From: Orbicella franksi
Taxonomy: Eukaryota
DNA length: 64,000 nucleotides
Assembly: GCA_964199315.1 (NCBI GenBank)
Contig: OZ116709.1
Coordinates: forward strand, 2,542,001 to 2,606,000
Direction: 5' to 3'
The first letter of the stretch is position 1, and each line of letters starts with the position of its first letter. The position numbers were made by a program, and so were the translations under genes. Positions 1 through 36,700 of the stretch are shown here, one piece after another. The notes below the pieces were generated by a model that saw only the letters and a program-made list of their open reading frames with translations, did not search any database and had not been told where the DNA came from.

Positions 1-799
1 ACAGCTTTGCAGTGTTTGTTTGCACCGTAAAGCCACTGAAACAACAAACAAAACTCTTCGCTCGAATTTTTTTCAGTTTCACGGTAACTCACCAGACCCT
101 TAGCAGGTTTTCACATGATAACATTTGAATCTGAAAATATTTCAAAAGGAATTATCAAAAATCGAAAACCAATAGCATTTTTGCATTTGATTTTAGGCTT
201 ACAATGGCTGGGCTCAGCTATTGGCTGCAACAGCTCGTTTAACATGCTCTCGACCAATCAAAGACAAATTTCATTCTTTACTAATCAAATACAAAACCTA
301 CACCAATCGAGACTTAGCTGCCGGGTTTTTCCCGCGCTTTTCTGAGGTCATAATGTATACATGAAGTTGAAGGGATTAGCTATGACATAACTCTTGGTTA
401 GTTAAAATTCTCTTCCCTAAGTATATCGAACTAACAAGTGCCATAGTTGTAGCCGTCGAACACTTTTATAGCCTTATTATAATCTCTCTGAAAACAGCAT
501 GATTTCTAAAGAGTATTACAAAAAATCACGTCCGTAAACACGTTGACCTGTGAGCAGGTTCACGGTTAGGTAAACGAGTCGGCGAACGAAGCCGACGCGC
601 TCTTGCGGCTTGGTCGCTCGGGTGCATGACCTGGACAAACGTGATAGTGCTCGCAGACTAAAAAAATGTTGTTGATGAGTGCAATGGCCTCGGTTAATTC
701 TCGGAGTCACGATTTCGTTCTCGACTAGCTCTTGACCCTTCGACTGCATTTAGCGGTTTCCTTCCAGACAAAACTAATTGTTCTTGTTTTTACTCCTAG

Positions 800-3700
800 T
801 CTTCCAGATCCATCAAGGCAAGGACGTAACGCTTCTGCCATCTTTGGGGCCAGCCCAAGTTTCGGACTATATCCGGCAGAGACTAAGCCTCAGTTCAGAC
901 CAGCCCCACCCAAAAGAGTCCCTGAACCCAAGAAGGTCAAAAGGAGTAATAGTGATGTAGCGCTCAGAAAAAGATCCAATCCAAGGCGGAAGTCAGGAGA
1001 TTTTAGCCAAGTGAGGAAACGCAGTGAAAGTGAGAGTGAAAATCATTTGAACGGCGTAACTTGTAACGGAAAAACTGTTTCCACTTCGATACTGTGTTCT
1101 GGATCAAAAGGGAGTGATTGCGCCGACACAGTCGCCGATAGCGTCTGTTCATTACCCGAACAGTCGCAAGATCCAAACGATTTCTCCAACAGGTATCCGC
1201 TGTTTATTCAAGTCAATAACGGTTCGCAAACCGCAAGTAAAGCGCGCATTGTAAAACCCGTTGGCAGGGCATCAAATCAAGGTTCTTACAAACAAGACGC
1301 TGCTCAAGACAAGCAGTCAGTCCGGCCTAGAAGAAGCGCCAGTTTTTCAGCGCCTAAAAAAACAGCTACTCCATCCAGACCCTCTCAATCAAGCCAGCCG
1401 GCCCAGGATACGTTGAAAAACGGAAACCTGCGCCGTGAGAAGAGTGATATCGTCAGACCTCGCCGTACGCGATCGCCATCTAATAGAACTGCTATCCCGA
1501 GTCCCGCTCGGTCAGTCTCTTCTTCTAGTCTTAAGCAGGACAATAGTTTAGTAAGCCCACGCTCTCAATCGCCAGCTGGTCTTCGGCGTGAACACAGTGA
1601 CGTCACCAAACGTCGCGCACCGCCAAGTGTAAGACGGGAAAAAAGTGACATTGTTCGACCAAGAGGCCAACTAAGAACTAACTCACCTACTGTGAGTAAT
1701 GAAAATTTAGAAGGCGACATAAGTAGGTCGTCAAGTAACAGAAGTTTAACTTCAAGTCCGTTGAGTAAATCACCGTCAAAGAGTTCAATTGAAGGCAGTC
1801 GATCTCGTTCAGGGAGTAGCAGCGAGATGTCGAAGATTCCGTCTCTTGTTCGATCGCCAGCAAGTGCTGGAAAAACAGACTCGCACGTTTCTCGTATTCC
1901 TTCTCTCACGAAGAGAAACAACAGCGAAGAACGTACTCCTCCCAAGAGTAGGATTCCATCTTCAACTAAAGGCGACAAGGCTCAAGAAGTCGCCCAGAAG
2001 TCTCAGTTGCCCACAGCCGGCCGGAAAGACAGCGCCTCACAGAAGGACAAGGCGGCAAGCAAGATTCCTTCATCTGCAGCACTGTCACAAAACAGACCTG
2101 ACTCAGCGAAAGAAAACAAAGATCCTACCGCTGCAAGTGTGCCAAATGGACATGAACCAGTTAAACAAGTGAGCAAAATCCCATCTTTCTCCAAGACTGG
2201 CATTCCCAAGTCGAAAATTCCGTCTGTAGCACGAAAAGACAGCCGCAACGAAGAACACCCGGCACTGAACGGAGAAGGACAAACACATTCTTCGGTAATT
2301 CGTAGTCCAAGTGATGCTACCAAGAGTAAGATCCCAGGTGTGTCTTCACCCCCGCAAGGAACTGGCATCCCAATGGGTGTCAGCAGGATCCCGTCATTTA
2401 CAAAGTCACCATCATCAATTAAAACACCGGAATCAAAGCAACCCAGCCCTGGAGGGTCCAAATCTTCAGAACCAGACGGACCACCAGCAAACGTGTCACG
2501 CATTCCAACGTTTCCTTCTACGCCCCCAAATAGGACCCCTGAGTCAAAGGTTCCTGTTCCTGGAGGGTCCAAGATTCCAGAACCTAAAGTCTCTACCAAG
2601 TCTCCGCCGAGCTCGTTACCAGTCGCTTCGAAGGCAAGTGGGATACCAAAGCCGGGGGAAAGCAGGATTCCTGGGTATGCTGGCGAAAAATCGACACGAA
2701 AAATTTCAAGTACAGAAAAAGAGACTGTAGCGACAGGATCACCAGTGGCTTCCTCGCCTGTGGAGACTAAGAGCAAAATTCCTTCGCTTCCCAAGCAGAC
2801 GGCGATTTCTAAGCCAAACGGAAACGAGCAAACTGCTTCCAAACCTAGAACTGGTATACCAACGCTAGGTGGGAAGCGACCCTCTATCGATCAAGACTCA
2901 CCAAGTCAGGAGGAACCTGCCACTCCTCCAAGCACACCGATTCGCGAGAATTTCTCTTCAGAATCGCCCTTAGATAAATACATTTTCACCGAGGCTAAGA
3001 AAATGGAACAGCTTCTGCGCGATGAACCCATTGAGGTATCGGTACCGGCGGAAGATTTCGACGACGACGACGAGGAAGAGTTTCTGCGCCAAGAAAAAGA
3101 AATTGAAGAAGAAGAAGAGAAAGAGCACGAGAAAGAACTACACATGTTGGACTCAAAAGAAGCCGAGGACTTGATCAGCGAAGTTTTGAAAAGTTATGCT
3201 CCTGACATTAACAAAGAAAACCAGCCAGAACTGGAAGAGGTTTCTACTGTGAAAGATGACAACAGAAACTTTAAAGAAATGGTGAATATTGATGACATCG
3301 TGCCAAAACCAACCAAAAGCGAAAATGAGCTGCCGACAAAATTAGAGGTGAAGGAAGAGAAGGTAGATAACGCCCTCAGCGAAATTAAAGTTGATTCGAA
3401 GGAAGTGAAGGAGAATGGCATTGCAGAGACAAGGAAAATAGCTGAAGTCCAGGAAGAGAAGGCCAAGAAATCAGAAGGCAAGAATAACGTACCAGACCTT
3501 AAAATTGCCATTCCAACCGAAAAGGTGGTTGAAAATGAGAAGGAAGAAAAAGTCGAGAAAGAAGCACCAAAGAGCGAAGGGCCTGCAATTGATACGTTGG
3601 GTGAATACGCCCAGCAGGCCAGGCGGTCGCGCAGTCGGCAGCGAAAAATTGTAAGCCCTGATTCAGAAGAACCCGAGAAAGAATTTGTGGCGGAATCTGT

Positions 3701-13919: not shown

Positions 13920-14140
13920 GTAAACGAACCAACGAAAGAACGCACAAATGCACAAATGCACAAATGCACAAATGTACACACAAACGAACGAACGAAAAAA
14001 GATAAAATGGCACGCACGTATGCACGCTTTGAGTATACGATCGGGAACTAGTCATGGAACGAAAGGACGAACGAATGAGGAAATGAACGGACGAGCGAAC
14101 GAACGAAAGAACGAACGAACAAACGAAGCCGAGCGAACAA
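13920..14140. repeat. Simple repeats (ACGA)n and (AAATGCAC)n
   Basis: Runs of gaacgaacga and three to four copies of caaatgca are directly visible. Confidence 0.6.
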
Positions 14141-15583
14141 ACCATCGAAAGAAAAATCAGAATAATAGGACGGACGAAGAGCGGTTTTCGACTGAGTGTC
14201 AAAACACCCAAAAGAAATTTATCACTGTGACCAATCACAGCTCGAACCAAATGCAAGTAGCTGTCACAAACCGCGGTATAACGTTTATGATTTGTCGAGA
14301 TTGGTTTTAGTTCTGCTAAGCCTGATTGGATGAAAAAGTGGCGGGAGATTCTTAAACTAATCACAAAGCGTAGTAAACTAGCCGAATGCAAAGCAAAGAA
14401 AATGCGAATTACTTTCGACAGAAGCGCTCTAATATTAATGTTCGGCACAAATACCAAGTTATCAGTTTGGTTTCACCAACAGACACTATAGTATTTTGGT
14501 TATTTAACTGGTAACATGGATGCGCGGAGTGATCTTTACGTACACCAGTATTCGGCTTTCGGAACTTTTCGGCCACTCTCCGAATATAACTGACTTTTTC
14601 TTTAAATTTAACGGTATAAGGCAGCAAATATCAGAACCGCCGAAAAGAAGTAAAAACTGTTAAGTGATAAACTGGAATTAGTGAGACACGAGACATGCTA
14701 TAGAGACTATGGAGGGACATTATTAGCCTGTTGCTTGTGCACGGTGAACTTCATTACGCTCACTGATTGTATTACGCAAGTGTATTAAAACGCCAAATTC
14801 ACTGAGAAACAACTGATGGATATTATTTCATGTACGAGTCTAAGCAAAGTCCACGGTATTGATTTATTTCAACACTCCTTATATTGATACGAGTTAACAA
14901 ATATTCCGGCCTTGATGATTCACGTGTTTGTCTTGTGTCGCTCAGTTCAGTGCCCTTTCAATAGACTCTTGGTACAAAGCACGTCCACTGAATTAAATGT
15001 CTCGGTCACGAAATGTCTTTTTTTTCCTCCAGGGCGCTCGTTCCCCCTTGCTTCTTTATAAAGCACATCCTTCACTCATGTTAGTTGGGACCACCTTTCG
15101 GTTTTACAGCCGGTTCGTTATTTAATACGTAAATGTCATAAACCAGTCGCATAAGCGAGCAAAATTAATGGCAAATGCAAGTTCGTGCAGTAAACAAACA
15201 AACATAAAAAAACATGACATAATGTCGTGTTCGGTTCTGGATTTAGCCACCGGATTCCGAGGTCATTTAGGGTTCATAACAATCGGTGATGGATCTCGGG
15301 GAGGAGTAGAGGCTGAGAGTAACGCCACCCTCCCCCCTCCCCCTCAACGCATACCTTGGATGAACTTATCACTCTATGTACAAAATAACGTAACTTAAAG
15401 AATAAGACAATAACGTGAGCTTAATTCTTAGGGTCCTTTGAACCTCAATGTCAACATTCAAATTCTCCTTACAGGTCTCCATACATTTCTTCAGTACTTG
15501 TTTAGGGAATCTACATAAGTAACCCTGAGTAGAGTAAACCCTAAAATGTTGGCCTTGCAATCTTTCGGCTTAAAGATTTAAAT

Positions 15584-15657
15584 TAGCCTGTGTACATCCG
15601 TCCCCTCACCTCGAAAAAAAAAATTGGGGAGGGGAGGGGGCGGATGTACACAGGCTA
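15584..15657. mobile_element. 74-bp hairpin mini-MITE with 9-bp TSD (Mutator-like)
   Basis: TAGCCTGTGTACATCCG ... CGGATGTACACAGGCTA, flanked on both sides by GATTTAAAT (15575-15583 and 15658-15666). Confidence 0.7.
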
Positions 15658-16182
15658 GATTTAAATCTTTTTTTTCTGTGAGATGAGCAAGAGAATAATA
15701 CACTGGACGTCATAATCCTCTTCTGTTACATCTTGCCTACTTAGTCAAACAAGAGTCAAAACTCTTGGACAAAATCCTTAACTCAGAAATATTTTTATTT
15801 GCCATAAAATATACTGGACGTTAGAGGTACACGAGTTAGAATATCTACTAGCTCGTGTGATCGCCGTCTTGTAGCGGCGGGGTGGCTCGCGTGTCTCTGT
15901 GGTGAGCTTATGTTTAATGCCGAAACGAATGAAACACTGGTTATTCTTTATACATTAAGTCCAGTTACTCTTTAAGGTTATTTTAAGCAGTGTTGACATG
16001 TTCCTGTCAGTAATCTGAACTTTGATCTGCATTGTCCATTGACAATCGAACAACCGAACGGGACATGGTGACGAGTATTCCACTTAAAGTATAAAAGGGA
16101 AGAACAGTTTTTCTTTTATCAAAGTTCAGTCAGCAGCTAGGTCCATACGGTTAGCTGTTACGTAAGCTCGCGAGAATCCACC

Positions 16183-17115
16183 ATGTCTGAAAGTCCTTCA
16201 ACGAAGCGAGGTCTCTTCCACAGGAAAATTGAAAAAAAACACGGTGAAAAATCTCCTACATCAGAAAAGACGAAAAGACGAAAGCATAAACGGGAAAAGT
16301 CGATGGCATCCTCAGAGGCTTGGCGCCTCGAAACCCCTGAAGAGCACTCAGAAGCTGAAGGAGCCACAGCGGAAATCACTTCAAACGTCAAGGCACCGAA
16401 AGAAAAGAAAAAGGCCAAGAATCTAGCCCACCGGTTATCATTTGGAAAAGGAAAGAAGAAGAAAATACGCTTCACTGAAGAGAAAGAAAATATTTACCTA
16501 GAAGAGCCCGCTCCTTACTCTGTTGAATGGGAGCTGCCGGAAGGAGACAGCGTTAAGGAAGGAATTGTCCAACAGATGGTCAGCCAGATCGAAGGCATTT
16601 CAGAACCTGAAGTTGAAGAATCTTGGCCGGCCGCGGTGACTACAATCGATGTGCCCGAAGATGTCGGCTCCGAAATTGAAAGCTTGGTCCCTGTTCCGGC
16701 GTGCCCCACTGTAGAAGATATCAGATCAGTGAAAACAACCATCCAGGCTGAATTCGAGGGGCCTAAAGAGATCGTCCCGTCAACTGGGATCCTTGGGGAA
16801 GCATTCACGAATTTGAAACAACTAGTGATAAACAACGAAAATCTTCTTCACGTGAATCCCTCCGGAAGTTTCCAATACGTGGTAAGCCTATATTCTTCCG
16901 ATTTCGGCCTCGCCAAGCTTATTGGCTTCTGGAGTTTTCTCCTGAACCGGGCAAGCGAAGCTACTAGACAGGTTTTGGTGTACTTTATCACATCCTTAAT
17001 CAAGAAGTATCCACAATGCTTCAAAGTTCACTTAAAGAAGATAAAAGAGCACCAGAGAAAGAAACTTGAGGCAGCAAAACAGGAGATAAAAGTCGCTGAG
17101 ACACTTATAGAATAG
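16183..17115 (+). CDS. 310-aa protein: polybasic N-terminus, acidic middle, more hydrophobic/helical C-terminus; no CaaX
   Basis: ATG in a good context (ccaccATGt). Shares SFG[KR]xKKK and NIY(L)EE motifs with the 18966 ORF. Contains KKIRF (RVxF-like). Confidence 0.7.
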   Translation: MSESPSTKRGLFHRKIEKKHGEKSPTSEKTKRRKHKREKSMASSEAWRLETPEEHSEAEGATAEITSNVKAPKEKKKAKNLAHRLSFGKGKKKKIRFTEEKENIYLEEPAPYSVEWELPEGDSVKEGIVQQMVSQIEGISEPEVEESWPAAVTTIDVPEDVGSEIESLVPVPACPTVEDIRSVKTTIQAEFEGPKEIVPSTGILGEAFTNLKQLVINNENLLHVNPSGSFQYVVSLYSSDFGLAKLIGFWSFLLNRASEATRQVLVYFITSLIKKYPQCFKVHLKKIKEHQRKKLEAAKQEIKVAETLIE

Positions 17116-18965
17116 TTGATAGAAACTGCACTAACGATATCAAAATGTCAGTAACCTGCGTGGATTTTTAATTGCAGTGACCATTTGCTCATAATTACAA
17201 GCGCATGCTGTAAGAATTCAGTATGTTTTCACTATTACGTCGTATCAGAAAGAAGTTAATACAAAGTGCAAAAGATGAGTGATCAAATCGATGGTAATCT
17301 GATGAGAGATCACTTGATACGGTGCTTAGAATTTCTTCACGATATCAAAAGGTCGCTGTGTGCAAGTCACGCGTCCAAATACGACACCATTAACGTGAAC
17401 AATGACTACGTTGAAAAACAAAAAACAAATTTAGAAGCGTTTTTCATTTTGACCAAGGGAGCAATTATTTAAAATTTTGGTTGTAAAGCGTTGAGCTTTA
17501 TGCTCAATGCAAATACTTGAAAAGGCCATCCAAGCAAATTATTCGCAAATCAGCCAATGGGGAATGAGTGGTGATAGAACAGCTAGCTTCTTATAACTAA
17601 TTTGCCAGAAATTTGTTGATACCGTCCGTGGTTTCTATTTGTCAATTTGTGCAGGATTTTTTCGGATGGCCTATTAGAAATATTCTGAAAAGTTCCATTT
17701 TAAATGTCCACCATATCTACTGGTACAAAGCCTTATTAGTACTAACAATTGTTTAAATGTTTTTCGCTGTTTCTGACAAGCTGTTGTCCGAATTGTTTGG
17801 ATTGCTTCATTCACGCTTAAGATCACGAGGCTAGCTTAGCTGACTTGTAAAAAATAGAACACCAGAAAAATAAAGCTTGTTGTTCAGTGATCAGACTTGA
17901 AATTTGATATTCGAAGTTCAAACAAAGCGATGTGTGATATTTGACTGAGATTAGATTCCAGAAAATCAGTCATTATGAATTGTTCAGCTGCGTTCATAGG
18001 CAGAGTCGAGTGTGTTTGTAGAACGAATACATTATTAGTGAATTATGTAATCGCGCTGCCATCTCACCATTTCTGTCCAAGTTCAAACAATCGGTAAATC
18101 AAGACATCTATGATTTTCTTTATTCTCATCACCTGTCAATTGGACCATGTGTTAATTTTGTAAGGAGATATGATAATTTGATCATTCTTGGGAATAAATG
18201 GCTGGCAAAGCCAGGAGACAATACTGTCGATATACGCGTTGTTTTGCGGCAATGTTAACAAAACTTTCCATTCAACTCTATGAAATGATGCGTGCAATTT
18301 ATTCAGGGGAAACACTCGTTTTGATTAACCTGTTCACGTTCTCTTCACATGCAAATTACAGATGGCTTGTGTCGCATCTTTCACGTTCAAAATCACAAAG
18401 AAATGTCGATTTCTCTAACCCTCTATATTTCGAACTTCCCGATAACTCGAACCAAAAGTCATTTCTCTCCCCTCAGTCGAAAGCTGTAATATTACACCCG
18501 ATTTCTCGAACTGGCCGAGTTTTCAAACCAATTTTTGTTTGTCTTGGAGGATGGATATATCGGGATTTCACTGTAGGTATTAACTTTGCACTTTGAAGAC
18601 GCGTGGAATAGACTTTGAACCGACCTAAAAATAATTCTGATTGGCTAGTTGCCCCGTGGAAATCAAGAAGTTCTTTTGACAAGTAACCGAGTAAGCAAAA
18701 CAAATCTATTCGGTTAGAAACAGTTGAGATTTGGATCTTCTAATATCTATCGACGGCAAAAAAAGAGCCTCATTTTGTTTAAATTCTGGCGAAAATGATT
18801 TAACTTCACGTGCACATATACCACGTGACGGCGTTTCAATAGATTCACACCTCTGCGATCAATGGACCTATTTAACATTTCTCCTTCAAATAATTTTATT
18901 CATTTCTGCGAAAACTAAGTTTGTAACGCAAGTGAAGCGATCTTTCTCAAAGATATTGGTGTAAA

Positions 18966-21900
18966 ATGGCAGAGAGTTCAAAGCAGTCAGCTGGATTAGA
19001 CAAGCAGCTTTTAGGCGCCAAAAACGAACCGGGAAAAGAGTCAAAACGTAAAAGGAAGAGAGGCAAAAAACCGACGCGAGCACAGTCTAACGAAACTTTA
19101 GAGAGCCAGTTGAAAAATCAGGAAAGCTTGGCTTGTGACGAGCAAAACGTTGCCGATAATAACAAAGACTCCAAGTTAAATACTGAAGGAACATCCCAAA
19201 CGGTTTCAGCAAGCGACGCAAGTGGAACATCGAACATTTCAAAAGAATTCAATCCGTCGGACGAGAAAATGACAAAAGAAGAGCAAACACAAGGGCACGG
19301 AAAACGTGACGAATGTACGAACAAAGATGTCCAGCAAGATCTCGAAACGATTCAAGAGCAGGGAAACGAGGAAGAAGAATCTAACTCCGAACAAGCTAAA
19401 CAAGATCATGCTAGCAACAGCAAGAAAGGCAAGCTTGCTTTTCACCGCTCTAAAAAAGTGAAAATTTCGACGAGAAAGAGTTCTGCCGACGAAGACAAGC
19501 ATCCATCAGATCCAGCGGGTGAGACTACCGCAGTAAACATCGTGAGTGTTGAGGGGAACACGAAAACTGCCGAAGAACATGTGTATAAAGCTGGCGGAGC
19601 AAACTTCGAAACTACAGACAACGAAAGCGAAGGCGCGTCAAAATCTCCCGAGGCAACTCAAGAAAAGCCGCAAAGCAAGAATAACAAAGGAAAGAAATTG
19701 AAGCAATTAGCAAGCTTTGGTCGAAACAAAAAGAAATACGAGATAGCATTCAAGTTGGACGAAACTTCTAACGAAACACACGAAGAAAACTCGGTTGATA
19801 CTCCAGGGAGATTTAAACGATCCCGGAGTACAAGCAGTCGACCTTTGCAGAATACCGAAATTGTCGACAATGAGTCAAAAGAACCTGTTGCTGCCTCCAG
19901 CAGTGATTTCAACAACGAAAATACGAACGATGGAAAAGATGAAGGAACAGAAATCGAGAAGAAAAGGGGTGGAAAGCAGAAGAAAAAAGGATCGGTCCTT
20001 GGTTTTAAGCGGAGCAAATCCCAGCCAAAGAGAAAACCATCGGCAAGCGAAGATGAACAAAACACTGAAGGCAATCCAAGCAAAGAGAGTGATGATGTTA
20101 GCGCCACAGGAAGTGGACCAGTGGAAGAGAATAAAGCTGGATTTGAAGAAGGCAACGAAGATTCCAAAGCAAATGAAACAGAAGCAGCTGATTTAAAAAC
20201 AGAGGGAACGTCGGCTGCGGCCGCGGAGATGACACAAGAAGTCTCTAACAAAGAAGAAACGAAGAACGCGAAAAGCAAGGAGACCGTCCCACCAACACAA
20301 GAAGATTCCAACCAAGTTACACCAAAAAAAGAAAAGAAAGAAAATATTTTGCGTCGCCGCCTGAGGAAGTTGAAGTCTCCTGGTAATATTCTCCAAGGAA
20401 GGAAAACATCACACGAAGATGAAAATTCCGTGGACGGTGCTGGTGATGAGCAGGCGGAGGAGAGAGCAAGTTCTGAACTGGAACAAACCGCAGAAGAACA
20501 AACACCGATAGCTGAGGATAACGACGAAAAAGAGTGTTCTGGTAACGAAGGAACTTCAAAAGCAGTTAAAAGAAAGACAAGTGATTTGAAGACTACCACT
20601 CGAACTTTGAAGAAAAAGAAAGAAGACGGCGAAAATATCATAGAACTTGAAGGTAACGAGAAGCACTCCGAAACAGCGCTAGCATTCATGAAGGGAAAGG
20701 ATGACCAAAACATATACGAAGAAGTAAATGTGTTAAGCGATCTGAAAAGTTTCAAAGAAATAAAAGACCTCACAGAAGTGAAAGAACAGATCGACGATGA
20801 AGTAAACAAAGAAATGTCACAACAAAAGAGCCTTATGGAGGAGCACGAAGAAAGCAAGCAAAGCAAAGTCGATGAAGATATTTCGCGCGCGTCGCTCGCG
20901 CGTGATGACAATAAAACCGAAGAAGAAGTTTCCAAAGAAGCTCGAAGAAAGAACCAAAAACTAATGCAAACAGTCATTAATGAGTTAACCGAGTTACTTA
21001 AAAAGAAGGAAGAAAATAAAGCCCCAGAAATTGAAATACAAGTTGAAGAAAGAGAAGAACGCGCTAAGTTCAGCGAAAGGGAAAATGCAGTTAGCGAAAA
21101 TCAGCAGTCAACGAGCGCACTTGATGACACTGGGCCTGAACACGAACCCAACGAAGAATCGTATGATTCGGATGTGACGGTAGTAACGGTCAAACGATTA
21201 TCGAGCTATGAGTCATTAGTGGAACACAAAACCGAACCAAATACCGAAGACGAAGAAATACGAGCCATCGCTGAGGAAGTATCTTCGGAAAGCGAGACAT
21301 CGCGAGGTACCGAGCCACCAGTTGAAAACGAAAGCAAACCGGATACCAAAGACGAAGTACGAGCTGTCACCGAAGAAGTACCCTTGGAAACCAAAACACC
21401 ACAAGTCACAGAGACACGAGAGGTCGATGAAACCAAGCCAAATACCGAAGACAACGAAATAGGCGCTATCATTGAAGTAATATCTAAGGAAACTGAGTCA
21501 ATGGAACCAAAATTGGAAATGGCCATCTCTGAGGAAGTGTCTTCGGAAGCCGAGGCACCACTGGAATCCGAGTTACCAGTCCCAAACGAAACCAAACAAG
21601 AAACCGAAGATGGAGAAATAAAAAGCTTAACGGAAGAGGTATCTTCCGGAACTGGAACTTCCGCAGCGAACAACGAAGATTCGCAAGTTGACACAGTCCA
21701 TGTTCCCAAGGCTGAGACCCGGGCAGAACACAAAACCGAACCAGGTACCGAAACCGAAGAAATTCACGACATCAATGAAGCCGGCGAAACCTCGGAGACC
21801 GAACCAAATCAGGAAGATTCCACAGTCGAGGCAGTGAATATTAAACCTGGGGAAGTCGTGCCTGAATCACGGACAGAACACAATACCAAACCAGATACTG

Positions 21901-22301
21901 AAGGTGAAGAAGTTAAAGACTTCATTGATGCCGGCAAATCTTCTGAAACCAAGACACCGATAGAGAACAGAACAGGTTCAAAATTCAAAGGGCGTATAGT
22001 GCAGGTGAATGCTCTGAAAAACGAATCGGAAGTCAGCGACGACAGCGATGAGTTGGAAACCATAACGAAGGCAAATGAACTGGACGAAAGAAAAGAGGAA
22101 GACGACGAAGGTGTTGGTCAAAGCAAAGAAGGCAGCTGTTTAATGGAGAGTACCCAGGCTCCCTCATATCAGAATTCCGTGGAAGAATGGATCGTGGTAC
22201 ATCGAGTGGACTTGACTGAGGAGATTTCGCGCCAAATTAAACACTCGCTGGTGTTTAACAGTCTGCGAAGATCCTACACCTCCTGCTGTACGATCATGTG
22301 A
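18966..22301 (+). CDS. 1111-aa acidic disordered protein with several polybasic clusters, internal repeats and C-terminal CCTIM (CaaX)
   Basis: Uninterrupted ATG-to-TGA ORF, Glu/Lys/Ser/Thr-rich. Its only Trp is in EEWIVV. Ends SYTSCCTIM*. Confidence 0.9.
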   Translation: MAESSKQSAGLDKQLLGAKNEPGKESKRKRKRGKKPTRAQSNETLESQLKNQESLACDEQNVADNNKDSKLNTEGTSQTVSASDASGTSNISKEFNPSDEKMTKEEQTQGHGKRDECTNKDVQQDLETIQEQGNEEEESNSEQAKQDHASNSKKGKLAFHRSKKVKISTRKSSADEDKHPSDPAGETTAVNIVSVEGNTKTAEEHVYKAGGANFETTDNESEGASKSPEATQEKPQSKNNKGKKLKQLASFGRNKKKYEIAFKLDETSNETHEENSVDTPGRFKRSRSTSSRPLQNTEIVDNESKEPVAASSSDFNNENTNDGKDEGTEIEKKRGGKQKKKGSVLGFKRSKSQPKRKPSASEDEQNTEGNPSKESDDVSATGSGPVEENKAGFEEGNEDSKANETEAADLKTEGTSAAAAEMTQEVSNKEETKNAKSKETVPPTQEDSNQVTPKKEKKENILRRRLRKLKSPGNILQGRKTSHEDENSVDGAGDEQAEERASSELEQTAEEQTPIAEDNDEKECSGNEGTSKAVKRKTSDLKTTTRTLKKKKEDGENIIELEGNEKHSETALAFMKGKDDQNIYEEVNVLSDLKSFKEIKDLTEVKEQIDDEVNKEMSQQKSLMEEHEESKQSKVDEDISRASLARDDNKTEEEVSKEARRKNQKLMQTVINELTELLKKKEENKAPEIEIQVEEREERAKFSERENAVSENQQSTSALDDTGPEHEPNEESYDSDVTVVTVKRLSSYESLVEHKTEPNTEDEEIRAIAEEVSSESETSRGTEPPVENESKPDTKDEVRAVTEEVPLETKTPQVTETREVDETKPNTEDNEIGAIIEVISKETESMEPKLEMAISEEVSSEAEAPLESELPVPNETKQETEDGEIKSLTEEVSSGTGTSAANNEDSQVDTVHVPKAETRAEHKTEPGTETEEIHDINEAGETSETEPNQEDSTVEAVNIKPGEVVPESRTEHNTKPDTEGEEVKDFIDAGKSSETKTPIENRTGSKFKGRIVQVNALKNESEVSDDSDELETITKANELDERKEEDDEGVGQSKEGSCLMESTQAPSYQNSVEEWIVVHRVDLTEEISRQIKHSLVFNSLRRSYTSCCTIM

Positions 22302-22821
22302 CTGTAAGAGAGAGAAACGCTCCGTGCTGAGCAGTCACTGTATCATGTGACAGCTGAGAAACAATGTACGAAAGGACGCGTCCACAAGTTCAACGTAGCA
22401 CTAAGAAGACTGTTTTGTACGGGTATACACGATGATTAGGTGATCGAAAACGTGTTTTAAAGTTATCGAGCCTGAAATTACTTGGCGTCATTGCGCAAAA
22501 ATTCATTTTAAAATTTCACTATTAATAAGACGCTAACAAAAAAATAGGTGCAAAACAAGTACTCAAAAACAAAATAGAAAATAGTAGTTTTGGCAATTGA
22601 TTTAAGTTTTGATGTTTGAATATAGAGAAGATTTAGTTGCAGAAGAGATGTTTCAATCTCGGTCTTGAAATATTGTATCTTTTTCCTTGAATTTCTTCAT
22701 ACGAGTGGAAATAAAGTACTTAATCATACGCATTTAGCTCTTTCGTTAGCACATAGGAAGCGAAATTGTCACGCTTAAGGAGCATCTATACTCTATTGAA
22801 ATCATAATTTCCCCTCTAACA

Positions 22822-23102
22822 GTTGACGAATTTCAGTATTCTCATCACCTGCGTGATCTATGATGCCCGAATATTGTCAGGAGAAAGTAGGTGTTTATCA
22901 CTTTGAAATTCTATTTCTCTATTTATAACTTTCCTCTGCTGGAAATCCCGCCTAATTTTTACAAGACTCTTCTAGTTTGCAAAAATTAGGCGGGATTTCC
23001 ACCAGAGGAAAGTTATAAATAGAGAAATAAAATTTCAATTCTCCTAACAACATTCGGGCATCATAGATCACCCAGGTGATGAGAATACCAAAATTCGTCA
23101 AC
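22822..23102. mobile_element. About 280-bp fold-back (palindromic) MITE-like element
   Basis: GTTGACGAATTT...ATTCTCATCACCTG...GGAAATCCCGCCTAATTTTT mirrored by AAAAATTAGGCGGGATTTCC...CAGGTGATGAGAATAC...AAATTCGTCAAC. No clear TSD. Confidence 0.65.
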
Positions 23103-33700: not shown

Positions 33701-36700
33701 CTAGGAATTTTTGGGAACAGCTAAAACACATGAAATATTGTGTTTGAAATTTCTATAAATTTCCCAAAATGTCAAAATTAAAGATGAACTCAGTGCATGA
33801 ATCAGTTTCTGTGAATTAGTAAAAATCAACAGGATCATTTCCCTGCAGTTCCATACCTTTTTGTTGTCAAGCTCCAAGGTAATTATTTACAAACAAATGT
33901 TACTACATTAATTCCAGTTTAAGTCTGACAACTCGACATAAAACTATAGCACTCATAACATTGCTTTTTAGATCCAACCTGATTTGTTAGTGTATATGTG
34001 CCCGTATGGACCCTTAAATCAAACACCCAGAGTTTAACTGATAGAAAAATGGATGCTCTCAGATATGATAAATAGATTGAGCAAAAAATTCCTGTCAGCA
34101 TAAATGTATATATATTATTTACAATTTCGATAAAACCAAAAGTATATATATGCATGTATATATTTAATATAATTGTAGATTCACACACATACCCATCACA
34201 GCCCACTGTTGAACAATTTTTGACTTGATCCTTTATGACTTTAGGAAAAAGAGGAAGACATCTCTCACAGATGTCAGAAATGAAAAGCTCACAGTTTCCA
34301 CACACTTGCTGTACATTTGTAAAACTGTACTGTGACATTCTCTGGACAAATTACCCGTAGTTTCATTAAAACAAGGATATCTTTAGCAGCCTCTCATTGT
34401 CATACAATGTCTTGAAATTAAGGCCAGAATAGCCATACAGGCATATTCTTTGGCAGAAAATGTTTTTTTCTTGTGAACAATTAGTTTCACTTTCATAGTA
34501 GGAATTAGCAAGGAGTGACAGGCCTGCACAACTTCTAACAATGAAAACTTTTGTACCATGTAATATATGACCCCTTTATAGTTTTGCTCTTACGAGTATG
34601 TCTTTTAGGGATTTACCTCTTTTATACGATATTAGTGGTGGCTCTTTGAAAATTTGCCGTAGAGAAGGCTGATTTTGTATCAAGTGCCATTTTTCCATTA
34701 AAACATTTTTGAGGTTGGGCACTGATGGTTGATATTGTGTTACAAAAGGCAAGAGTTCTTTCCGGCTTTCATGTTTTTGTCTTAGCGCCGATTCCCTTTC
34801 TGTGAAATTAATATCTGAAAGGAGTGTTTCGATCAGATTTTTTGGATAACCTCTAGCAAGGAGACGTGATTTGAATTTGTAAATGTTCTCTTCAAATGTT
34901 GCTCTTGAAGAGTTAGTTCGTAAGAGTCTTAGAGCTTCGCCCTTCACGAATCCCTTTTTGACACCCGGTGGGTGGCTAGAGGAAAAATGAGTGTATTGAA
35001 AGGTTTCAGTTGGCTTAAAGTGTGTTTTTATATCCAGGATGGATTGATCTCTAAATCGTTTGCCTTTGTATACAACTGTATCCAGAAATGTAGTTTCAGT
35101 ATTTGAAATTTCAGCTGTAAATTTGATTGTAGGGTGATGTGAGTTTGCTTGTTCGATGAACTTGTCTATATCAGGTTGGCTGACATTCCACAAAGAAAAA
35201 ATATCGTCAATGTATCGTTTCCAGATTGTGGGTTTTGCGACGCTATTGCTAAGAATCTCTGTTTCGATATTGGCCATAAAAATATTTGCAAAAGCAACGG
35301 CCATTTTAGTATCCATGGCGGTACCGTGGATTTGTAGATAATTCTTACCATTGAATTGGAAAGAATTTTCTTTCAGTATCAGGCTTAGCATTTCTTTGAG
35401 ATATTGTGTGGGGATATTTTCTTTGAGATATTGTGTGGGGATAGGAGGGTTATATATAAACAAGCAAACTCACATCACCCTACAATCAAATTTACAGCTG
35501 AAATTTCAAATACTGAAACTAAATTTCTGGATACAGTTGTATACAAAGGCAAACGATTTAGATATCAATCCATCCTGGATATAAAAACACACTTTAAGCC
35601 AACTGAAACCTTTCAATACACTCATTTTTCCTCTAGCCACCCACCGGGTGTCAAAAAGGGATTCGTGAAGGGCGAAGCTCTAAGACTCTTACGAACTAAC
35701 TCTTCAAGAGCAACATTTGAAGAGAACATTAACAAATTCAAATCACGTCTCCTTGCTAGAGGTTATCCAAAAAATCTGATCGAAACACTCCTTTCAGATA
35801 TTAAATTCACAGAAAGGGAATCGGCGCTAAGACAAAAACATGAAAGCCGGAAAGAACTCTTGCCTTTTGTAACACAATATCAACCATCAGTGCCCAACCT
35901 CAAAAATGTTTTAATGGAAAAATGGCACTTGATACAAAATCAGCCTTCTCTACGGCAAATTTTCAAAGAGCCATCACTAATATCGTATAAAAGAGGTAAA
36001 TCCCTAAAAGACATACTCGTAAGAGCAAAACTATAAAGGGGTCATATATTAAATGGTACAAAAGTTTCCATTGTTAGAAGTTGTGCAGGCCTGTCACTCC
36101 TTGCTAATTCCTAGTTAGACAAAAGCTTTTGAATGAACTTTGTCATCCCGAATCATACACGAGCGGGTCACTCAGTCATGGCATGAAATGAATTCTGGCT
36201 AAAGCAAGGTTGAAACAATTTAGGTTGCCCAGAGGGCATGCCTAAACAATTTGATTTGCGAATAACAAGTCGTTTCTCTCACCACACTTGTTCAAACGAA
36301 ACAAATATAGCAGTTCTCACTGATCCCAGTCAAAGTTCTTGACAAAAACTCCAACGAGGCAGCCACAGTCTGCATGAGTTTGATATGTCTCCTGTGTGTT
36401 TCAGCCTGACTGTATGGCAATCCGTGTTGATCTTCAATTTTTGTCCATCCGTATATTCTTTTGCGTTTACTCTATTATTTAAATGTTCCTTTAATGTTTT
36501 AAGTGTCTTTTTTAATATTTCTAATGTCTAAATTTGGCTAAAAACCGTGATATATATCCTCCAATTCGAGAGTTGTTGATACACTTATAGAAGAAGGAAA
36601 ACCTTGATTTAGTCTACTGTAAGCTCAAGATTTATGTAACATATTTATCAATAGTATAGAAGCACCTTCACAATTATCAAGTCTTCTCTTTCAACATTTC

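Follow-up and report, generated by a model that had tools for sequence, protein, structure and literature searches.

What kind of genes lie behind a run of open reading frames (ORFs) that all read in the same direction, show no recognisable domain and end in a prenylation signal? The question is raised by a stretch of 64,000 nucleotides from the coral Orbicella franksi (assembly GCA_964199315.1, contig OZ116709.1, positions 2,542,001 to 2,606,000 of the forward strand; this whole stretch is referred to here as the window). An earlier note on this DNA had pointed out four + strand ORFs, named here O1 to O4, with the ends GKCSIM (4241), VCCTVM (6644), NVCSIL (13355) and SCCTIM (22301), and had read them as one family or locus of lipid-anchored scaffold proteins in which only a C-terminal module had survived since duplication. 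Translation of the window confirmed the four ORFs and their ends, and a fifth gene in the same orientation (O5), missed by that note, was found inside the cluster between O3 and O4. O1 to O5 are uncharacterised genes, probably for lipid-anchored disordered adaptors. The reading that we prefer, and to which we give a probability of roughly 55%, is that five independent co-oriented genes in a conserved order would all encode domain-less, intrinsically disordered adaptors, four of them anchored by prenyl (plus palmitoyl) groups, with tails that would dock Atg8-family proteins and bodies that would recruit further partners.

The CaaX ends themselves are a first indication that these ORFs are genuine. 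A CaaX box was defined by a Cys at position -4, two mostly aliphatic residues and a last residue X that directs the protein to farnesyltransferase (FTase; M, S, Q or A) or to geranylgeranyltransferase I (GGTase-I; L), and all four boxes (CSIM, CTVM, CSIL and CTIM) comply with this rule at true ORF ends. In a six-frame stop-to-stop scan of the window a strict CaaX closed 4 of the 54 ORFs of at least 100 aa, against 4 of the 1128 ORFs of 30-99 aa, and the four long ones coincide with the long + strand ORFs that look coding. Given this enrichment, the boxes can hardly be there by chance. The low-complexity composition and the failure to find domains would be what one expects of chance ORFs in non-coding sequence: a Pfam scan of the five window ORFs (E <=1) and of ten orthologues (E <=0.1) gave nothing above noise, the weak matches (BTBD8_C, TPR_LAA1_C, Ku) falling far below their cut-offs. 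Against this, starts, tails and lengths are conserved across Scleractinia, in the case of O1 and O2 across Hexacorallia, and a spliced transcript of O1 is known (contig L014, see below). Conservation has already refuted the chance-ORF explanation, which we regard as practically negligible.

The conservation is worth following gene by gene. O1 gave 44 matches at E <=0.001, Nematostella and Actinia among them, and its orthologues keep the tail F-E-D-V ... DEKTVKC-x-C-GRGGK-CSIM. The orthologues of O4, down to 29% identity, retain the N-terminus and a tail ending in CCTIM or CCTVM. In two other corals and in Nematostella the orthologue of O2 is found downstream of O1, at a distance of 2-3 kb; the Nematostella protein ends in CCVVQ. 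An orthologue of O5 (E 3e-23), flanked by O3 and O4, exists in a distant coral. The synteny check that the note had proposed found the order O1-O2-O3-O5-O4 preserved on one strand over ~50 kb of a single 2.67-Mb contig of a distant scleractinian. The CaaX ends, whose loss in orthologues the note had named as a reason to give up its idea, are kept in orthologues of all four genes, for O1 and O2 as far as the sea anemones. An extra copy of O2, truncated at the N-terminus and with tail and CCTVM intact, was also seen 1.3 kb upstream of a full O2 orthologue (L003:15006-15269).

The same evidence bears on whether these are several genes or one. The note had itself raised the alternative that the ORFs are last exons of a single gene beginning upstream of the window, and their shared orientation, tight spacing and conserved order would suit this. 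An upstream exon is indeed used by O1. The translation of O1 matches at 100% the NCBI Orbicella faveolata 'titin-like isoform X2' (1157 aa), whose start (MSSFWEKLAQP, exon 1) was searched as a pattern in the window and is absent from it; the last exon begins at nt 800, right behind a polypyrimidine tract and AG acceptor. L014, a transcript contig of 3.9 kb assembled from a related coral, matches the window from its nt 377 only, precisely at nt 800, and runs at least 64 nt beyond the O1 stop; the NCBI model, looked up in the contig index, had no record there. In PALMD, a paralemmin-family gene, alternative splicing can moreover exchange the CaaX end for another C-terminus. What decides the matter is the structure of the remaining genes. 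O2, O3, O5 and O4 each begin at a Met of their own that orthologues conserve, preceded 8-13 codons upstream by an in-frame stop, and are found on mutually non-overlapping contigs that carry exact or 98-99% identical products and are still colinear with the genome 86-535 nt upstream of the ATGs. Six of the O2 contigs were fetched, from six Joint Genome Institute (JGI) samples, and all are colinear over 5853-9482; the contigs for O3 (L012), O5 (two from JGI) and O4 (L013) are colinear with 12679-14116, 16049-17999 and 18431-22938. The mRNA-like size and tight boundaries of the JGI and Logan contigs suggest that they derive from RNA. In other species the NCBI annotation has separate gene models for O2, O3 and O4. 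For these reasons alternative last exons of one gene are very improbable, and O1 to O5 are separate genes. The description of each ORF as a single exon holds for the coding sequences (CDS) of O2, O3 and O4 and fails for O1, spliced according to both L014 and the NCBI model. Coordinates are collected in Table 1.

Table 1. Genes of the cluster and the sequence features within them (window coordinates).
Feature	Position	Strand	Remarks
O1, last exon, ~1146 codons	800..4241	+	spliced gene; exon 1 upstream of the window
O1, array of 19 [ST]x[IL]P (SxIP-type, EB1-binding motif), 12 of them S[KR]IP	1488..2861	+	shuffle test
O1, FEDV, acidic F-x-x-V	4107..4118	+	40 residues before the C-terminus
O1, putative lipidation cluster C-M-C-GRGGK-CSIM	4203..4238	+	two upstream Cys and CaaX
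O2, acidic, 125 aa, CDS in a single exon, C-terminus CCTVM	6267..6644	+	exact product on 24 contigs
O2, WIFV (W-[VI]-x-V, GIM-type)	6540..6551	+	sole Trp of O2
O2, CC and CaaX (CCTVM)	6627..6641	+	CC invariant
O3, 196 aa, CDS in a single exon, C-terminus CSIL (geranylgeranyl type)	12765..13355	+	31 orthologues
O3, conserved block VFFSAIGEWTIV	13206..13241	+	holds W-T-I-V (LIR core, not GIM) and FFAT-like FFS
O5, 310 aa, no CaaX	16183..17115	+	exact product on two JGI contigs
O4, acidic and disordered, 1111 aa, CDS in a single exon, C-terminus CCTIM	18966..22301	+	20 orthologues
O4, tail module WIVV, D at +7, L at +8, predicted helix EEISRQIKHSL	22188..22250	+	sole Trp of O4
O4, CC and CaaX (CCTIM)	22284..22298	+	CC invariant across O2/O4-type tails
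GIM, GABARAP-interaction motif; LIR, LC3-interacting region; FFAT, two phenylalanines in an acidic tract.

Whether the separate genes are related by descent is a different question. The statement that the bodies cannot be aligned does not hold for O2 and O4: in a blastp comparison among eight sequences O2 aligns with the last 116 aa of O4 at 32% identity (E 5e-5). A profile of the O2 and O4 tails, used in an exhaustive search of 1.84 billion representative proteins, retrieved 21 clusters at E <=0.001, all of them O2-type (small) or O4-type (large) proteins. CC-a-a-[M/Q/L] is present in all of these clusters with the exception of one truncated fragment, and is C-terminal except in two mis-called read-throughs. 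The named members of this O2/O4 family are both anthozoan (a 'myosin-2 heavy chain-like' protein of Pocillopora and an 'uncharacterized protein' of Nematostella). We gave up the view of the four tails as a single homologous module, since hhalign comparisons of the O1 and O3 tail profiles with that of O2/O4 and with each other were not significant (E 0.065-0.24) and the alignments pick up the aromatic motif (see below) or the CaaX only. By sequence, homology is demonstrable for O2 and O4, which together form one small family; O1 and O3, each a conserved gene of its own, have only short motifs in common with the others. Gene structure, conservation, the statistics of the motifs and the homology of O2 with O4 are shown by these data, and our confidence in the structural part is high.

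O5 shows that the tail is not what is always preserved. Its N-terminus is O4-like and it carries a polybasic motif, followed by a conserved hydrophobic or amphipathic tail (DFGLAKLIGFWSFLL ... YPQCF) with a pair of short hydrophobic stretches and, in the place where the CaaX would be, a YPQCF-polybasic end that is conserved. No transmembrane helix is predicted (maximum KD19 1.1), and the tail is possibly another kind of membrane anchor. A tandem pair in another coral (L002, 2729-6340 and 9989-13627) has both kinds of tail: the bodies are 92% identical, one gene having an O5-type tail on an O4-type body and the other a tail with the W-motif and CCTIM, which points to a body recently duplicated or gene-converted with tails that differ. 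From this pair it follows that tails have been exchanged among tandem paralogues and that the tail is not the sole part kept; O5 is a paralogue of O4 whose tail differs. Taken together, a single family reduced to its C-terminal module does not fit the data, as only O2 and O4 are demonstrably homologous among the four and O5 kept its N-terminus and changed its tail. The remark that no named family could be recognised was borne out. There is no Pfam domain, the database names are all automatic (titin-like, myosin-2 heavy chain-like, uncharacterized), and a literature search by accession found no paper describing these genes. Titin and myosin heavy chain, the sources of the NCBI names, were discarded for want of any Ig/FN3/kinase or myosin motor match in Pfam; the names are artefacts of low complexity.

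How might these proteins reach a membrane? O1, O2, O3 and O4 would be tethered through prenylation of their C-termini. O1, O2 and O4 would be farnesylated and receive a second lipid on an adjacent Cys, and O3 would be geranylgeranylated beside an RRKK patch. In a yeast reporter human FTase farnesylates the box of O1, CSIM, completely; prelamin A has the same box, and CxIL-type boxes are fully modified by human GGTase-I (PMC11152559). In its 31 orthologues the O3 box is always C-x-I-L with a free a1 position (S, C, R, K, H or L), the pattern expected of GGTase-I substrates. The X residue of O2 differs among species (M/Q/L) and the CC before it is invariant. Extra cysteines upstream of the box, reported earlier for three of the ORFs, are indeed present in O1 (C-x-C, 8 residues before the CaaX Cys) and in O2 and O4 (CC); in the alignment of O1 tails C69, C71 and C77 are invariant.

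A close described parallel to this predicted anchor is that of the paralemmins (PALM1-3 and palmdelphin; PF03285), which are likewise acidic, largely disordered and poor in aromatic residues, with conserved cassettes between variable linkers. Their CaaX ends in M, with a palmitoylated Cys immediately before it and behind a basic cluster (PMC2148134, PMC3405040), and both the C-x-C ... CSIM of O1 and the CC-a-a-M of O2/O4 are of this type. The arrangement in O1 (C-x-C-...-C-a-a-X) is like the palmitoyl plus farnesyl cluster of H-Ras and paralemmin. Unlike the coral proteins, paralemmins have neither an array of SxIP motifs nor a W-x-x-V motif in the tail, and their authors found no invertebrate homologue except one putative lancelet exon (PMC3405040). 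Membership was rejected because PF03285 gave no match (window ORFs at E <=1, ten orthologues at E <=0.1), so paralemmins are analogues only. Ykt6 (C-C-A-I-M) has the same CC-a-a-M end as O2/O4; it is farnesylated and then geranylgeranylated at the upstream Cys by GGTase-III, which recognises the folded longin/SNARE core (PMC9141697). As the O2 and O4 proteins have no fold for that enzyme to recognise, we judged such double prenylation of the CC doublet less likely than palmitoylation of the extra Cys.

O4-type proteins, possibly also O5, could be components of the nuclear envelope of the lamin-B/Kugelkern sort, with a polybasic nuclear localisation signal and a farnesylated tail in the inner nuclear membrane. 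A KRKRKRGKK-like cluster (O4 residues 27-35) is conserved in all orthologues and the CaaX ends in M, that of O1 being identical to the one of prelamin A. However, the invariant CC points to a second, cytoplasmic lipid as in paralemmin, Ras and Ykt6, no intermediate-filament or other nuclear domain was found with Pfam, and polybasic clusters recur along the body in a manner more like the membrane motifs of MARCKS/AKAP12. We therefore consider a nuclear-envelope role quite improbable.

The four CaaX proteins have a second element in common, an aromatic-x-x-Val motif ([W/F]xxV) situated 32-43 residues before the C-terminus. The core of the LC3-interacting region or Atg8-interacting motif (LIR/AIM) was taken as [W/F/Y]-x-x-[L/I/V], and the GABARAP-interaction motif (GIM) as [W/F]-[V/I]-x-V, a GABARAP-selective motif defined by published structures (PMC8727931, PMC7615515). 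In the mode named 'LIR core + C-helix' the core is followed by an acidic position +7 and a hydrophobic position +8 or +11, at the start of an amphipathic helix (PMC8727931). Judged by their sequence, the O4-type tails fit the GABARAP-selective core and C-helix rules, with a GIM in 26/27, D or E at +7 in 26/27 and L, M, I or V at +8 in 27/27. In the AlphaFold2 (AF2) model of the O4 tail a helix occupies tail residues 54-64, directly behind the core, at moderate confidence (predicted local distance difference test, pLDDT, ~75). It is from this fit of motif and helix that docking of Atg8-family (GABARAP/LC3) proteins at the membrane by the coral tails is derived, and we put the chance that this part of the mechanism is correct at about one in three.

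The other tails follow the pattern to differing degrees. A LIR core is present in all four. W and V of the O2 motif are invariant among 12 O2-type sequences, and in the short class a GIM was found in 10/10 tails scored (two O4-type fragments included). O1 (F-E-D-V) and O3 (W-T-I-V) fit the core only, with S or P at +7 and E at +8. Among 12 diverse orthologue tails of O1 the F of the FEDV block is invariant and D and L nearly so; in O3 the residues V, F, F, S, I, G, E, W and T of the block are invariant in the orthologue alignment. A search of PDB sequences with the O2/O4 tail profile returned chance matches only. Two further conserved stretches were observed along the way. The invariant V-F-F-S-x-I-G-E of O3 comes right before the Trp motif, and its FFS is like the core of a phospho-FFAT (VAP-binding) motif; O2 has at residues 60-67 (window 6444-6467) the sequence VVITEQDI, an acidic-flanked V/I run conserved from corals to Nematostella and similar to a SUMO-interaction motif or to a second motif for beta-strand addition.

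Several observations weigh against the adaptor mechanism that we favour. O2-type tails have no acidic residue at +7 (K, H, Q or R instead; acidic in 1/10 of the short class), O1 and O3 are missing the GIM residue at +1, and in distant O4 orthologues the Trp is not preceded by acidic residues. The whole tail block (W, helix, LLxLSSVY and CC) stands at a fixed distance from the C-terminus, 32-38 residues separating the W from the end in tails that finish with CaaX, and in O2-type proteins the full 40-aa tail is conserved as one block, LLxLSSVY included. Such a block could equally be a membrane-proximal targeting or lipidation determinant. The AF2 models are of low confidence and mostly disordered, the RNA origin of the JGI and some Logan contigs is suggested by size and boundaries and is direct only for the spliced L014, and all the functional inference is built on short linear motifs.

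An alternative can be constructed on these points in which the proteins are anchored as proposed but W/F-x-x-V and the helix are a membrane-proximal determinant instead of an Atg8-binding LIR: an amphipathic segment that favours membrane binding, a feature recognised by palmitoyl- or prenyl-transferases or by lipid chaperones, or a dock for some other partner. Besides the fixed distance, the conserved 40-aa block and the failure of the +7 rule in O2, it would accommodate the three tail types without significant profile similarity and the FFAT-like FFS of O3. It would not predict that O4-type tails comply with three independent structure-derived positions, nor that the only Trp in the 1111 aa of O4 falls exactly in the motif. 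We hold this alternative to be possible and rather unlikely, and retain Atg8 docking as a conditional part of the adaptor reading.

The bodies of the proteins appear to be disordered, AF2 giving no fold for O2 (pLDDT 47) or for the O4 tail (pLDDT 60), and would serve to recruit further partners. A case in point is O1, with 19 SxIP-type motifs against 2.0 +/- 1.4 expected from 5000 shuffles, and with 12 S[KR]IP where no shuffle exceeded 2. Its orthologues have 11-23 SxIP motifs each, and the motifs stand in a basic, Ser/Pro-rich context. At the level of sequence this combination is the signature of EB1-binding plus-end trackers, and the O1 body may thus reach EB1-decorated microtubule plus ends through its array. 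The ESM Atlas neighbours of O1 include MTUS2, AMER2, NCKAP5 and APC (0.67-0.78), and those of O2 include FAM219A, a paralemmin-domain protein and UL11; with all scores for O4, O2 and O1 below 0.8 these are leads only. The membrane-binding plus-end trackers AMER2, APC, MTUS2/TIP150 and NCKAP5 have in common with O1 the basic Ser/Pro-rich SxIP regions, a likeness and not a demonstrated homology. To our knowledge, none of them has a CaaX end. A literature search on SxIP and CaaX found the two combined in no other setting than engineered anchors or unrelated proteins. Polybasic S/F-K motifs like those of MARCKS/AKAP12 recur in O3, O4 and O5, and it is through these that the three may find their partners. 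Membership of AKAP12 or MARCKS was rejected, as neither WSK (PF03832) nor the MARCKS effector domain matched; the S/F-K likeness was noted by eye and the language-model neighbour is weak. Lipidation, Atg8 binding, EB binding and location in the cell are accordingly put forward here as predictions.

A natural precedent for several of these elements in one protein is found in the giant ankyrins. The 480-kDa ankyrin-G and the 440-kDa ankyrin-B combine a palmitoyl anchor with a giant disordered insert encoded in a single exon, in which ~10 SxIP motifs bind EB1/EB3 and pull microtubules to the membrane (PMC6839619), and they bind GABARAP very tightly through a LIR core and C-helix (PMC7615515, PMC8727931). 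O1 would unite a lipid anchor, an SxIP array and a LIR-like motif in the same way, and O4 the LIR with the helix. The difference is that giant ankyrins are palmitoylated at the N-terminal side, whereas the coral anchor is a predicted C-terminal prenyl group, and there is no sequence homology; ANK repeats, ZU5/UPA and the death domain were all without a Pfam match, and membership was rejected. Autophagy receptors such as FAM134B, SEC62, RTN3 and those like TEX264 also have a membrane anchor, a disordered linker and a LIR with acidic +7 and hydrophobic +8, LIRs that are classed as category 1 (PMC8727931). They are held by transmembrane segments or reticulon hairpins, in contrast to the predicted prenyl group ~35 residues from the LIR in the corals. 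A single literature search on LIR together with CaaX returned two general reviews only and no prenyl-anchored receptor of this kind. A bolder version of the adaptor reading, tentative and in our opinion doubtful, is that the O2/O4 family, and O1 and O3 by convergence, would be the first prenyl-anchored Atg8/GABARAP-binding adaptors, organised in a five-gene hexacoral block, with O1 as a non-bilaterian counterpart of the giant ankyrins.

The remainder of the window contains features of another nature. Two inverted, near-identical reverse-transcriptase-like ORFs at 34.6-36.0 kb (34576-36036) are putative retroelement fragments, and ORFs at 43608-44986 look retrotransposon-like by eye. Inverted duplicated ORF ends are found at 52151-58888 around a run of N (54625-54780), an example being NPAESTGCSCCF at 54094-54252 (+) and 56787-56945 (-). 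Simple repeats read as ORFs at 50532-50930 and 63471-63923, one of them an (AAT/AGC)-type run translated as (NS)n, the other a tandem repeat with LYSVL as its translated unit.

Lipid-anchored disordered scaffolds, the paralemmins and the giant ankyrins, organise cortical membrane domains in vertebrates. Corals and sea anemones appear to own conserved proteins built on the same logic, four of them side by side. If the tail binds GABARAP/LC3, prenylation would be added to the ways in which autophagy or Atg8 adaptors are fixed to membranes, a point of relevance to membrane traffic in animals with symbionts inside their cells. Should O1 bind EB1, it would be a natural version of the artificial SxIP-CaaX tethers, and would bear on whether cortical microtubule capture by lipid-anchored SxIP proteins predates the giant ankyrins of Bilateria.

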